A stretch of 64,000 nt of DNA from Schizochytrium sp. TIO01 (taxonomy: Eukaryota > Protista > Bigyra: Labyrinthulomycetes). Position 1 is the stretch's first letter; each line of letters begins with the position of its first letter. The DNA lies in assembly GCA_004764695.1 (NCBI GenBank), contig SMSO01000025.1, positions 1 to 64,000 of the forward strand, written 5' to 3'. Below the pieces are notes generated by a model, which was not told where the DNA came from, did no database searches, and saw only the letters and a program-made list of their open reading frames with translations. Positions 318 through 6,451 of the stretch are shown here, one piece after another. The position numbers and the translations under genes were made by a program.

Positions 318-3300
318 TTATTCCAATCTAAAGTTTGCGCCAACGATATCTGGTGTTAGCAAAGGTGACAATAACTCTCTCAGAACGAGTCGAAGATTTC
401 TATCCTGAATTTGTGCATTCCAGTACTCACGCAGCCGTTCAGCGCGGAGCAACTGCCACGCTCACGAACCTGCTGAAATGAATAAGGAAAAAATGGATCT
501 TGCCCAAGCTTTTTCAAGCAAGTTCTCACATGATCATGACATGCATCTTCATCCTGAGAACTGTAGCCAAGACACCAAGCGCAGAAGTGATGACCACAAG
601 TCTCATTACCACACCTCTACAGCACAGCAGCCGTCAAAATCGTGTACATATGCCTTACAGTTCGGACAACATGTGCTCAAGATCTTCTCTTGAATATGAA
701 GTAAATGAAGCCGTGCGTCGCGATTCTGTTCATCAGCACGTAGAAACTTGTGCTATACGCCTTTGGATCTCCTTCTCCGCCCAAGCTGCTGCCTTCATTT
801 TCTGCCTTCATCTTCGCAATCAACAATAGGTGATTCAAAGCAGTTGGTGCAAGACGGGTGATTTCTTGACCTGATATTCTTCCACTACATTCAGGTTTCA
901 TGCATGCCATTGTTCCATCAGCATCCACTCTTACGTTAGCAAGTGGCCGTGCCGCCGCTTCTACAGAAGATTCGATACAGTCTCGGCAAAGAAAGTCTCC
1001 CTCCTCGCAGCTCGTGCCCTCGGAAAGCAGACGCTCCTCCATGCATACTAGACATATCTTGACAGGGATCTTAGGAGCTCCAAAAGCTTCATGTTGGAGT
1101 GCTTGGCGAGCGGTTGGACGCTGGCCAGGGTCTGTTGCTGTAAGAGCATCGATAAGTTTCTGCATTGCAGCGGTTCGCTCAGTAGGATACAGCTCCTTTA
1201 AGCTGATGCCCACAGAGTACATGTCCATCGCTGTTTCAAACCTATCTACAGGCCCATTCTGCAACTCGGGGGCAACGTACCGTGGCGTTGCCTGAAGTGA
1301 TGTGTAAGTTGCAGTGTAGTCCGCAACCTTGATGCCGTCAAAGTCGCCGATCAATGGTGTCCCGTTGCTTGTGAGGAAAATGTTTTCTGGTTTGATGTCA
1401 CAATGCACAATGCCGTGGGTATGTAAATCCGCCACACCGATAAGCAGGCCCATAGCAAGTCGGTCGCGCGCTGCTTTGCCTTCGTTAGGGTGACTCTCAA
1501 TCCACCTGGCAAGGTCACCTTGCTCGTAGAAAGGCATGACGATACAGCCACGCGGTTCTCCATTAGAGGTATCCACAAAAGCGCCAGTAATACGTATCAC
1601 GTGCTGAGACACCACTTTGCCCATATTTGCAGCTTGCCTGTAAAATATTTTGTGTTGGCTCGAATGGCCGAGTTGAAATTGTTTCAAAACCATAGTTTTA
1701 CCAGCGTTGTCAAGAACCTTTTGTACTCTCTTGCCACCTCTGGAAGCAAGGGGCTCGCCAACAGGCTTGAAGTCCGAAACTGTGACATTCGTCAACCAAA
1801 GGTCAGAACATGCTACTTCAAAAACACCCTCTGCACTTACGTGAAGCCTTTCCAGCCAGGCGCTATCTTGCAGCAACTCTGGATAATGTTCCTGCGCGTG
1901 TTGCAGAGTCTCAGCAAGCTTATGACGAAAAGCTTTGCTAAGGTCGATAGGGTTGCCTTGAGAGAGAATGAGCTCTTGTTTTTTCATTCTATTTCTAAAA
2001 TATGTTCGCTCTTCCTCATCCAAGTCCTCTATTTCAAGTTCTTCTTTGGCTCTCTTCAAAATTTCTGTGGCTTTCCTCGACTTGTCAAGTTTCTGGAATA
2101 ATGCTTCAACATCTGAGACAGAAGGTTCTTTCAAACCCAGTGCTGCAAAGTCATACAGATTAAAGAGATCTGTTGGTGTGCACTTGCTTGCATCATTCAA
2201 CACTGTGCTTGCAGAGTATCCTTCAAATCGAGCGAATGTTGAACTTATCGCGCAAAGTATTTCCCACAATTGGGTACGAAGTGTATCTCCTTGTAGATCT
2301 TCGATCTCTTGCTTGAGAGCACTCTCAAGTTCAGACAACTCTGGTTCTAGCTCCATGGCCTGCTCAGGTGTCCTCAGGGCAACCGATAATCCATCACCAA
2401 GTTCTAGCTCAGACAATCGAGAGATGACGCGCTTTACAGCTTGTTGGCTTCGTTCACCAATGTTGTTGTGTTGGCCTTCTCCACTCCTCTTGTACCCTTC
2501 CACGCATTGGACAGCCTGAATAACGAGTTCTTGGCAGTGTTTGAAGTCATCAGTGCTGGTTTCTTCATCGACGGGTGCAAGGTTGATCTTTAGATCGTTT
2601 ACGAAACTTTCAAATCTCACTTTGAATTCTCGCACTGCACTCTCATCACTTTCGCAAAGGTTGGCGCGAACCCATGGGTACACAACCTGCAAAAGTGAAT
2701 ACAGGTGCCTCCGTTCGGTGTTCCGCTTTTCGATGAGGCTGGCAAAGCCATCAGCAGAGCTTGCACGAATCTGGCCTTGTAGCACGTCAAGACTCTCTTT
2801 GGAGTTCTTGATGTCAGCGAAAACCTGTCGCAACTTCACTTGGCCAAAGTAGCCCTGGATCGCCGGTCGAACGAATTCCTCAAGCAGGGCAATCCCAGTC
2901 AGCAGGGAATTTCCTCTGACCCCGCCTCGGTCCGCGCGCAAGTCCGAGACTTTCTTGGCAAGCTGCACCACATCAGCGAAACTCACGCTCGCTCCATCCG
3001 GCCGTTCTCTGAGGCGAACAAGAAGACGTAAGCAAACGAGCAAAATGATGTTAAGGCAGCAACAAAAGCAGACGCAAAAGTTAGGATACCCTCTATCTCA
3101 ATAACACAATTCGTGGAATGAATCATTACACGATCCCAAACAAAGACTGACCGCATGAACTTACCCAGATCCATCCAAAGTAGCAAGCCCGGCGCCATCA
3201 ATGCCGTCTTGTTCGTTCTTGGGCTCTGCAGAAGGCTCGCTTTCTGCAGCCTCTATGGAAGCAGAGGAATCGAGCTCTGACGAGAAATCTGCAATGTCCT

Positions 3301-6300: not shown

Positions 6301-6451
6301 TTCAAAACTATTCTTCTTCTACAAAGCTGACTACTACAACACATCGACGACGCGATGCTTCCTTCTTCTGTCTCCTCCCTTCTGCATCGTGAACTTACTC
6401 TATCTCCGTCGTATCTTCTGTGATGCCCTTAATGCTTTTTGCCACAGTCAT
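318..6451 (-). CDS. Multi-exon LRR (7 ribonuclease-inhibitor-like repeats) - helical region - Ser/Thr kinase - RING / RING2(RBR-like) protein
   Basis: Manually spliced exons: 6451-6399 (MTVAKSIKGITEDTTEI), LRR exons 6242-6147, 5808-5725, 5377-5279, 4920-4837, 4489-4391, 4037-3954, 3615-3532, linker exon 3359-3165, large exon from 3008. All introns are GT(AAGT/ACGT)...CAG and phase 2. Kinase motifs VLK, HCDIKPEN, DFDG, YVAPE, DMYSVG. RING-like CLVC..C..C..C..CMKPEC, then in shifted frames CCPNCKAYVHDFDGCCAVECGNETCGHHFCAWCL, ending NFRLE-stop at 318. Several 1-nt indels between ~460 and ~790 (sequencing error or decay). Confidence 0.85.
3532..6242 (-). repeat. Tandem array of ~420-450 bp intron+LRR-exon modules (6 near-identical introns), including an 888-bp higher-order duplication
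   Basis: Repeated blocks such as gtgcctttgcgacggcctttgcgccc and gactgtgagtataaatgaataag; variable (CTT)n(CTG)n microsatellite in each intron; exons 4391-4489 and 5279-5377 are identical and 888 bp apart. Confidence 0.95.

Follow-up and report, generated by a model that had tools for sequence, protein, structure and literature searches.

An apparently non-coding tandem repeat in Schizochytrium sp. TIO01 is the exon-intron array of a spliced gene family encoding putative LRR-kinase-RING1-Rcat recognition proteins

In the thraustochytrid Schizochytrium sp. TIO01, a tandem repeat of about 440 bp that looks non-coding lies beside a protein kinase reading frame, close to one end of a 64,000-nucleotide stretch of DNA (contig SMSO01000025.1, positions 1 to 64,000; hereafter the window). 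We found that this array is the exon-intron structure of a spliced gene and not a satellite. The locus at 6451-318 on the minus strand is a real, transcribed and spliced member of a gene family in which leucine-rich repeats (LRRs) are joined to a protein kinase and to two zinc fingers resembling the RING1 and Rcat domains of RING-between-RING (RBR) ubiquitin ligases, the whole probably acting as a soluble cytosolic recognition receptor.

Tandem Repeats Finder placed a repeat of 422/446 bp, in 6.1 copies, at 3567-6229. Read on the minus strand, each unit consisted of a short exon and an intron of 338-358 nt, and the region resolved into a 10-exon gene made of a start exon, seven LRR exons, a linker exon and a long last exon, with the ATG at 6451-6449 and the stop codon at 320-318. 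All nine introns were of the GT..AG type and all nine were in phase 2, therefore the frame is kept whatever the number of modules. The coding length was 3564 nt (1188 codons), with the last exon taken from an intact copy on a second contig, C32, which is described below. A 32-nt core of the LRR exon occurred six times within the window against none expected by chance. The original prediction had proposed that the repeat splices into seven LRR exons, and its coordinates, exon sizes (84, 96 or 99 nt) and phases were all correct. It had further joined these exons to a "788-aa kinase ORF" (open reading frame); the junction through the linker exon held, but the first 12 codons of that ORF turned out to be intron.

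Splicing was examined with contigs of four public sequencing runs, aligned to window positions 470-6465. Three of these (X1, X3 and X4) were small runs, guessed to be RNA and carrying three different organism labels, and the fourth (X19) was large and DNA-like. The joint 3008->3165, which skips 156 nt reading CT..AC on the plus strand, was exact in X1, X3 and X4 and absent in X19, and the joint 3359->3533, from the last LRR exon to the linker exon, was likewise present in the three small runs and absent in X19. Sequencing depth in X1 was 0-0.6 in bins that held intron only versus 59-845 in bins bearing exons, whereas X19 covered the introns. Within the array, the joint 4910->6159 contained 22 inserted letters and read ...CKNL-TY-L-I-L-GW-NNIG, in a perfect 28-residue period; this joint, together with 4910->6149 and 4466->5725, decoded as the intron-free LRR-LRR junctions of paralogues, and the joint 6215->6399 (run X3) was the junction of a paralogue's exon 1 with its first LRR exon. 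The family is spliced as predicted. The two junctions that tie the array to the kinase exon, for which an RNA-read check had been proposed, were thus seen in the three RNA-like runs and not in the DNA-like run, and the claim of a single chain was further borne out by a relative, P0009, whose ORF has the same architecture.

The array itself carried a trace of recent change. Introns 4490-4836 and 5378-5724 were 100% identical and the exons upstream of them encode the same peptide; a block of two modules (888 bp) was recently duplicated inside the array, giving modules 3-4 and 5-6. The 15-nt insert in both 99-nt exons (4465-4485 and 5353-5373) forms a G5-T7-G5 homopolymer run coding for GGGFFGG. 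In a copy of this insert on contig C35 the run of T was five or six long, a difference due either to genuine length variation or to sequencing error in a homopolymer, and related 99-nt exons on C30 read GGWGLGC and GGGGLGC.

For the LRR part, each exon was assessed singly, and P0009, a natural relative, was used in addition. The exon peptides followed L-x-x-N-N-I-G-(S/D)-E-G-A-K-A-V-A-K-A-L-E-G-C-K-N-L-x-x-L, and this is the ribonuclease-inhibitor (RI) type of LRR, with 28-29 residues and the pattern LxxLxLxxN(x)IGxxGAxxLAxAL; each exon adds one repeat of 28-33 residues. LRR_6 was the sole Pfam family matching the LRR exons, with five of the six exons scanned singly giving E-values of 1e-4 to 1.4e-2. 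These single-exon scores were below the 23.4-bit cut-off because one exon holds just part of the profile. P0009, a complete ORF from an MMETSP transcriptome, carries about 12 RI-type LRRs (LRR_6 1.4e-33) before the same kinase-finger core, and since it is a transcript ORF it gives independent RNA-level support for the architecture. Neither a signal peptide nor a membrane helix was found in the protein, as had been predicted: the start exon is hydrophilic, the linker is acidic, and within the last exon the highest Kyte-Doolittle mean over 19 residues was 1.22.

The last exon opens with an all-alpha domain. This domain had no sequence match in the PDB and no match in the ESM Atlas; its best Foldseek hit had E 0.23 (several rows of ClyA-type pore toxins, not significant), and VIA-align returned generic helical bundles only, with Z of at most 8.4 and no significant fold match. 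The kinase that follows scored above its profile cut-off with the catalytic residues of eukaryotic protein kinases in place, and its motifs (MVLK, HCDIKPEN, DFD and APE) were near-invariant across 86 relatives. Its best match in the PDB was 9GMP. It deviates from the usual pattern in being non-RD (HCD) and in having DFD instead of DFG, and judged from these motifs it is apparently a catalytically competent non-RD kinase. Kinases of the non-RD (His-Cys-Asp) type are over-represented among the innate immune receptor kinases of plants and animals; the non-RD catalytic loop at about 1405-1382 of the window is noted as a lead only. No Pfam match to a NACHT or NB-ARC P-loop NTPase was obtained in the last exon, and in a search for a ROC-COR GTPase or NB-ARC domain the last exon matched kinase families alone in Pfam and the linker had no match.

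AlphaFold2 (AF2) modelled the 254-residue tail behind the kinase at a pLDDT of 93.7: a RING-like finger is followed by a helix of 55 residues, then by another finger, and the end is helical. When this model was searched with Foldseek, the only matches at E<0.1 were RBR ligases, with RNF216 first (6.9e-5), followed by HHARI, HOIL-1L, ARIH2 and parkin. For the RING1-like finger, the best ten VIA-align matches were all RBR RING1 domains, at Z 6.2-7.6 over model residues 6-100; they included RNF144A (1wim, Z 7.6), parkin, HOIL-1L, ARIH2 and HOIP. Such middling Z values support a likeness to RBR RING1 domains and are not proof of it. The second finger aligned without gaps to RING2 of HHARI (1wd2_A) over 35 residues with every Cys in register, at a borderline phmmer E of 0.028, and VIA-align matched the Rcat region to RNF216 at a borderline Z of 4.4. 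Its Cys residues were near-invariant in 46 relatives. The first Cys of its GCC motif aligned with a Ser of the ARIH1 entry 2m9y, a position that we take to be the catalytic Cys of HHARI, replaced by Ser in 2m9y; this Cys is a conserved candidate for a catalytic residue. Pfam IBR and RING models gave nothing significant on the finger pieces or on the intact tail, a profile of the kinase-tail relatives run against PDB sequences returned kinases only, and phmmer with the whole tail gave only weak rows to RNF4, E6AP and parkin. As modelled, the module is RBR-like (RING1-helix-Rcat) and not a canonical RBR.

An exhaustive profile-free search returned 104 cluster representatives at E<1e-30. Many of these relatives share the helices before the kinase (with a ...YPELL motif), the kinase, RING1, the helix and Rcat in one stretch, and their N-terminal repeats may be LRR_6 (P0009, P0033), ankyrin (P0008, P0023) or WD40 (P0022, P0024). 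Named relatives were found in Hondaea fermentalgiana (GBG34857.1, GBG31919.1 and GBG34335.1), Chromera velia (Cvel_13004) and Sphaeroforma arctica (XP_014152813.1), and further ones in Durusdinium trenchii, Polykrikos and Euglena, all annotated just as kinases. The identity to these unannotated protist kinases was 25-69%, and neither a cassette-exon family nor ubiquitin ligases have been described among them. With the closest named homologues in H. fermentalgiana, and with ribosomal DNA (rDNA) and spacers laid out as in Aurantiochytrium limacinum, the thraustochytrid setting given in the original prediction was correct.

We further investigated the extent of the family in the genome assembly (64.07 Mb in 37 contigs), where counts of kinase exons and of intron modules are lower bounds. 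The kinase exon had at least 57 matches at 55-99% identity, most with open frames of about 925 aa, and the intron module recurred at least 327 times (94-100% identical), so the paralogues expected from a genome-wide count of the intron module were indeed present. A census of module number in about 15 genes gave 5, 6, 6, 7, 8, 10, 11 and 11 modules in complete genes; three genes passed 15 modules within the fetched sequence, and the positions of intron modules imply about 20 in some. The array units of paralogues measured 405-541 bp, mostly 414-446 bp. All seven LRR exons of the window gene had the same phase at both ends, and the repeat number varied between paralogues, which is the one-repeat-per-exon arrangement of the Ectocarpus type. 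The frame was open in 138 of 150 modules and the GT and AG sites were kept almost throughout; exon 1, the 250-nt 5' flank and the linker exon were also conserved in other family genes. Because the boundaries are in phase 2 and the introns are near-identical, repeats can be gained, lost or exchanged without a shift of frame through unequal crossing-over or conversion, and the spread from 5-11 modules in complete paralogues to at least 15 in others agrees with the gain and loss of repeats proposed earlier. The last exon was 2685 nt long and without a stop in all 14 paralogues compared, with an overall dN/dS of 0.31 (kinase 0.20, finger tail 0.28, helical domain 0.41). The core is under purifying selection.

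Variation among the repeats was determined in 105 internal 84-nt exons from about 15 genes, 97 of which were distinct. Over the 22 scaffold codons, nonsynonymous diversity (pN) was 0.035 and synonymous diversity (pS) 0.106, a pN/pS of 0.33, and the aligned introns had a mean diversity of 0.066; scaffold and introns are near-identical genome-wide, with a diversity of 0.03-0.07. Codons 2, 3, 25 and 26 and the split codon, on the other hand, showed a per-site diversity of 0.4-0.74, with pN 0.57 and pN/pS 1.55. These positions are the x residues of L-x-x-L-x-L-x-x-N, and only these were hypervariable. The concave sheet with which LRR proteins bind their ligands is lined by the residues at these x positions. 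On the DNA, the variable positions form patches of 6 nt and 11 nt that straddle every splice junction. The contrast between pN 0.57 in these codons and an intron diversity of 0.066 agrees with the earlier proposal of a diversifying sensor, and selection against homogenisation would be the simplest reading of the patches, to which a local mutational or conversion process could add.

Based on these results, we propose how such a protein might work. As a soluble cytosolic receptor, it would bind diverse ligands through the variable LRR face, and this would free the helical-kinase core or bring several such cores together. Once engaged, the kinase would activate the ubiquitin-ligase module in cis or tag proteins as its substrates, and the output would be ubiquitination of a defence type or in self/non-self recognition. 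PINK1 and parkin offer an analogy for a kinase switching on an RBR ligase. It is possible, although we do not favour it, that in the same protein the LRR face serves substrate recognition instead, so that the family would comprise kinase-coupled ligases each directed at a different endogenous or viral protein, or acting in self/non-self, mating or kin recognition. LRRs act in this way in F-box/LRR ubiquitin ligases, an E3-like module is present in the same chain, relatives carry ankyrin or WD40 repeats, both of them general scaffolds for protein binding, in place of the LRRs, and no NTPase switch of the NLR/STAND type was found. However, a family of more than 50 members that varies only on the binding face, with a pN about nine times the intron diversity, is more typical of an arms race than of housekeeping choice of substrates. 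The sensor and substrate-receptor readings overlap and are indistinguishable by sequence.

Several points weigh against the recognition receptor as we propose it. The spliced runs were only guessed to be RNA, and their short contigs come from related strains or paralogues that differ by 2-10%; they support splicing of the family, and no one molecule joins every exon of the window locus. In 12 of the 150 modules the exon was 1-2 nt too short or too long, which would break the frame. Off-length modules, clustered on C7 and at a contig end, were located at C7:1070085-1073467 (seven, in one array), C35:2712435-2713315, C12:17562 and 18403, and C8:118031, and they are either assembly indels or dead exons, inactivated exons having been described in Ectocarpus. 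The immune or recognition role, which we infer, rests on analogy, and the kinase and E3 activities are predicted from motifs and models. The IBR domain is absent: no Cys/His cluster occurs between Cys707 and Cys780, where the model has a single 55-residue helix, and the best Pfam match of IBR type (IBR_2, E=1.7) fell on the Rcat finger and not in the gap. Two residues past the candidate catalytic Cys there is Ala, versus His in HHARI. Since there is no IBR, no Pfam IBR match and Ala in place of His, ligase activity could be altered or lost. The "RBR-type" fingers of the original prediction are therefore supported for RING1 and Rcat, and not for the IBR between them.

The last of these points concerns the patches. 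Synonymous diversity was also raised inside them (pS 0.37), and the Leu codons 24 and 27 varied synonymously. Because this raised diversity sits beside near-clonal flanks, there is room for a directed process that makes or reshuffles the patches, for example gene conversion patch by patch or an exchange of cassettes between the at least 300 modules, possibly during clonal growth. We consider such a process improbable; if it did exist, it would amount to a combinatorial, anticipatory receptor repertoire in a protist, with a logic like the assembly of variable lymphocyte receptors in lampreys.

As given, the window sequence breaks the ORF off at 677 and scatters the zinc fingers over three frames. 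The window is the start of contig C24, and when its positions 1-9765 were compared with the end of C32 there were 0 mismatches and six one-base gaps, all six within the first 800 nt of C24, the following 8,965 nt being identical. C32 ends about 12 kb into the window (overlap 1-11990); the start of C24 and the end of C32 are an unmerged overlap of one locus. In the coding part, C24 has extra bases at about 792, 743 and 614 and lacks one at about 461, none of which applies to C32, and the extra bases at 792, 743 and 614/615 were absent from the contigs of all four public runs. The last exon of C32 is a single open frame of 895 codons with the same stop and without a terminal intron. We treat the frameshifts as consensus errors at the contig end, because long-read assemblies typically betray such errors by indels that crowd near the end of a contig and come with no substitutions. 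Since C32 is free of the indels, the zinc fingers lie in the same exon as the kinase; the end of the 788-aa ORF of the original prediction was produced by one-base indels alone. It is very unlikely that the window copy is a decaying pseudogene, with real frameshifts and a product that is at most an LRR-kinase truncated after RING1. The stops after ORF codon 788 and the three frame changes in the window as given would fit such a gene, but the pattern of six one-base indels with no substitution, the identity to C32 that follows and the public contigs lacking the extra bases all argue against it. Short introns bridging the frame changes at 800-380, including a 65-nt GT..AG candidate at about 468-405, were ruled out by the intact copy, which reads through. 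The six one-base indels of C24 also mean that other genes at contig ends of this assembly may look frameshifted.

In the subtelomeric rDNA of A. limacinum, LORE-TEARS repeats have been described as non-coding spacers with no GenBank similarity and a proposed role in chromosome-end maintenance, and group 5 of these, which lies between two 5S rRNAs, has a unit of 408-481 bp (median 430) in 1.8-20.4 units (10.1101/2023.06.15.545109). The LRR arrays of Schizochytrium fit group 5 in period, copy range and 5S-flanked position, a comparison made through published statistics. Contigs of the present assembly reach 9.8 Mb, against published chromosomes of 1-4 Mb. It is hardly credible, and largely refuted, that the window array is such a non-coding spacer with a structural or regulatory role and an LRR frame that is chance or relic: although the array resembles these spacers in the length and number of its units and in lying between 5S genes, most modules are open with their GT/AG sites kept, the RNA-like runs lack the introns and have the spliced junctions, the scaffold pN/pS (0.33) and core dN/dS (0.31) point to a coding sequence, and the complete transcript ORF of a relative has the LRR-kinase-finger architecture. 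The features of the gene and its surroundings are collected in Table 1.

Table 1. Features of the LRR-kinase-RING1-Rcat gene and its upstream region, in window coordinates.
Feature	Position	Strand	Evidence or remark
5S rRNA gene, 1.2 kb upstream of the window gene, same orientation	7683..7801	-	Rfam RF00001, 91.9 bits
Conserved 5' flank (promoter or 5' untranslated region, with CT tract)	6452..6700	-	76-94% identity ahead of exon 1 across 8 further complete genes of the family
Exon 1 (53 nt: ATG + 17 codons + 2 nt; GTAAGT donor next)	6399..6451	-	ATG, 53-nt length and GT donor kept in 8 paralogues
LRR exon 1/7, 96 nt, N-terminal cap-like repeat	6147..6242	-	Phase 2 at both ends
LRR exon 2/7, 84 nt	5725..5808	-	Pfam LRR_6 E=8e-4 (single exon)
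LRR exon 3/7, 99 nt, 5-residue GGGFF insert ahead of NNIG	5279..5377	-	LRR_6 E=7e-3
LRR exon 4/7, 84 nt	4837..4920	-	LRR_6 E=1e-4
LRR exon 5/7, 99 nt, peptide same as LRR exon 3/7	4391..4489	-	Adjoining intron 4490-4836 is 100% identical to 5378-5724
LRR exon 6/7, 84 nt	3954..4037	-	LRR_6 E=0.014
LRR exon 7/7, 84 nt, C-terminal cap-like, ends ...AKSLHKACPSVII	3532..3615	-	LRR_6 E=1e-3
Six near-identical introns, 338-358 nt, between LRR exons (most of the "satellite")	3616..6146	-	94-100% identity in at least 327 genome copies
195-nt linker exon: acidic, rich in Ser, no domain matched	3165..3359	-	85-100% conserved in 16 stretches of other family genes
Intron 9, 156 nt, GT..AG	3009..3164	-	Exact joint 3008->3165 in X1, X3, X4; absent in X19
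Last exon part 1, all-alpha domain of ~400 residues	1808..3008	-	AF2 pLDDT 84.3; dN/dS 0.41 among paralogues
Last exon part 2, Ser/Thr protein kinase	1073..1807	-	Pfam Pkinase 1.3e-29, 103.8 bits against a cut-off of 31.7; dN/dS 0.20
Last exon part 3, RING1-like finger, C-x2-C-x11-C-x3-D-x2-C-x2-C-x24-C-x4-C	887..1054	-	AF2 pLDDT 93.7
Last exon part 4, long helix linker without zinc-binding residues	669..886	-	Model helix 80-134; spurious extra bases at ~792 and ~743
Last exon part 5, Rcat (RING2)-like finger, CPNC-x9-C-x4-C-x4-C-x4-C-x2-C ... CH-x-H-x3-C	518..668	-	Spurious extra base at ~614
Last exon part 6, helical C-terminal end with the stop codon (320-318)	318..517	-	Base missing at ~461

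Many family members were located about 100 kb or less from contig ends, and a position between two 5S genes was typical, with flanking 5S genes on C4, C5, C7, C8, C12 and C13. The 5S genes were dispersed in a repeating unit of 5S plus family gene (C12 at 10295, 20275, 42332 and 60122; C8 at 108332, 120788, 171604 and 183048), and the two may have been amplified together. The window itself contains two complete 18S-5.8S-28S units placed tail to tail, at 13656-19176 (+) and 40735-46257 (-), with a 5S gene outside each (7683-7801 (-) and 58301-58419 (+)). Three arrays lie between the two units: 413 bp x 4 (20182-21828), 410 bp x 4 (38093-39744) and 371 bp x 7.5 (28039-30797). The layout is the same as that published for A. 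limacinum, in which the subtelomeric 5S is transcribed away from the telomere and 18S-28S towards it; the 413 bp x 4 array after the 28S gene compares, as does the 410 bp x 4 array, with LORE-TEARS group 1 (407 bp x 3.8), and the 371 bp x 7.5 array further out with group 2 (365 bp x 5.7) (10.1101/2023.06.15.545109). A search of the window for the telomere repeat TTAGG gave no hit. The arrangement looks like two chromosome ends joined head to head, whether by a real fusion or by an assembly join. Between 5S and 18S on both sides, RI-type LRR peptides of another family were observed at 9807 and 10293 (+) and at 53977-54509 (-), with the motif N-x-I-G-x-x-G-C-x-A-L-A-E-A-L-K-x-N and no array by Tandem Repeats Finder; these stretches may occupy the position of the "group 0" spacer.

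With these results, chromosome-end repeats published as non-coding spacers would become the exons and introns of a large expressed gene family. Heterotrophic stramenopiles would have a candidate repertoire of variable receptors inside the cell, in an organism that can be cultured and whose close relative A. limacinum carries persistent mirusvirus infections, which makes protist immunity or self-recognition testable. The gene and its relatives define a widespread, unannotated protist module, a single chain in which a kinase and an IBR-less RING1-Rcat ligase, and with them phosphorylation and ubiquitin transfer, would follow sensors that can be LRR, ankyrin or WD40 repeats. Near-clonal introns and scaffold set against saturated binding-face codons also provide an unusually clean natural case of concerted evolution opposed by diversifying selection.

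Compared with known systems, the family combines features of several. A literature search returned no second paper mentioning LORE-TEARS and none on an LRR family in Aurantiochytrium; group 5 was published as non-coding, whereas the window unit is one LRR exon plus an intron of an expressed gene. With the RBR ligases (RNF216, HHARI/ARIH1, HOIL-1, parkin and RNF144) the tail shares a RING1-like fold, a helix and then a putative Rcat with the Cys spacing of HHARI RING2. It differs from them in having no IBR/BRcat, with 72 residues free of a zinc-ligand cluster between the fingers, in the fusion of the module behind a kinase, in the His ligand of RING1, which is Asp in this subfamily, and in the His two residues after the Cys, which is Ala. 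The animal NLRs and ribonuclease inhibitor likewise are cytosolic and carry 28-29-residue repeats of the form LxxLxLxxNxIGxxGAxxLAxAL, but the Schizochytrium protein has no NACHT or NB-ARC domain and its effector part is a kinase with an E3-like module. The repeats of animal NLRs and ribonuclease inhibitor also come in exon-sized modules, with a repeat pair per exon versus a single repeat here. Unlike a plant LRR receptor kinase, the protein has neither a signal peptide nor a transmembrane helix before the kinase.

The closest parallel lies in the brown alga Ectocarpus. Its LRR-ROCO and NB-ARC-TPR genes share with the window family one repeat per exon of symmetric phase, in-frame shuffling, gain and loss, and membership of a clustered stramenopile multigene family, and they too are cytosolic candidate immune receptors with positive selection on the concave LRR face (PMC3341825; PMC11378527). 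The Ectocarpus exons, however, are 72 nt long, encoding a 24-residue LRR attached to a ROC-COR GTPase, and the LRR-kinases of that alga are without shuffling (PMC3341825). In the window family the exons are 84 nt long and encode 28-residue repeats of the RI type, the introns are homogenised at about 94-100% genome-wide, the effector consists of a helical domain, a kinase and RING1-Rcat, and the genes are tied to 5S genes near chromosome ends. Even so, among described systems the one-LRR-per-exon ROCO family of Ectocarpus is the nearest.

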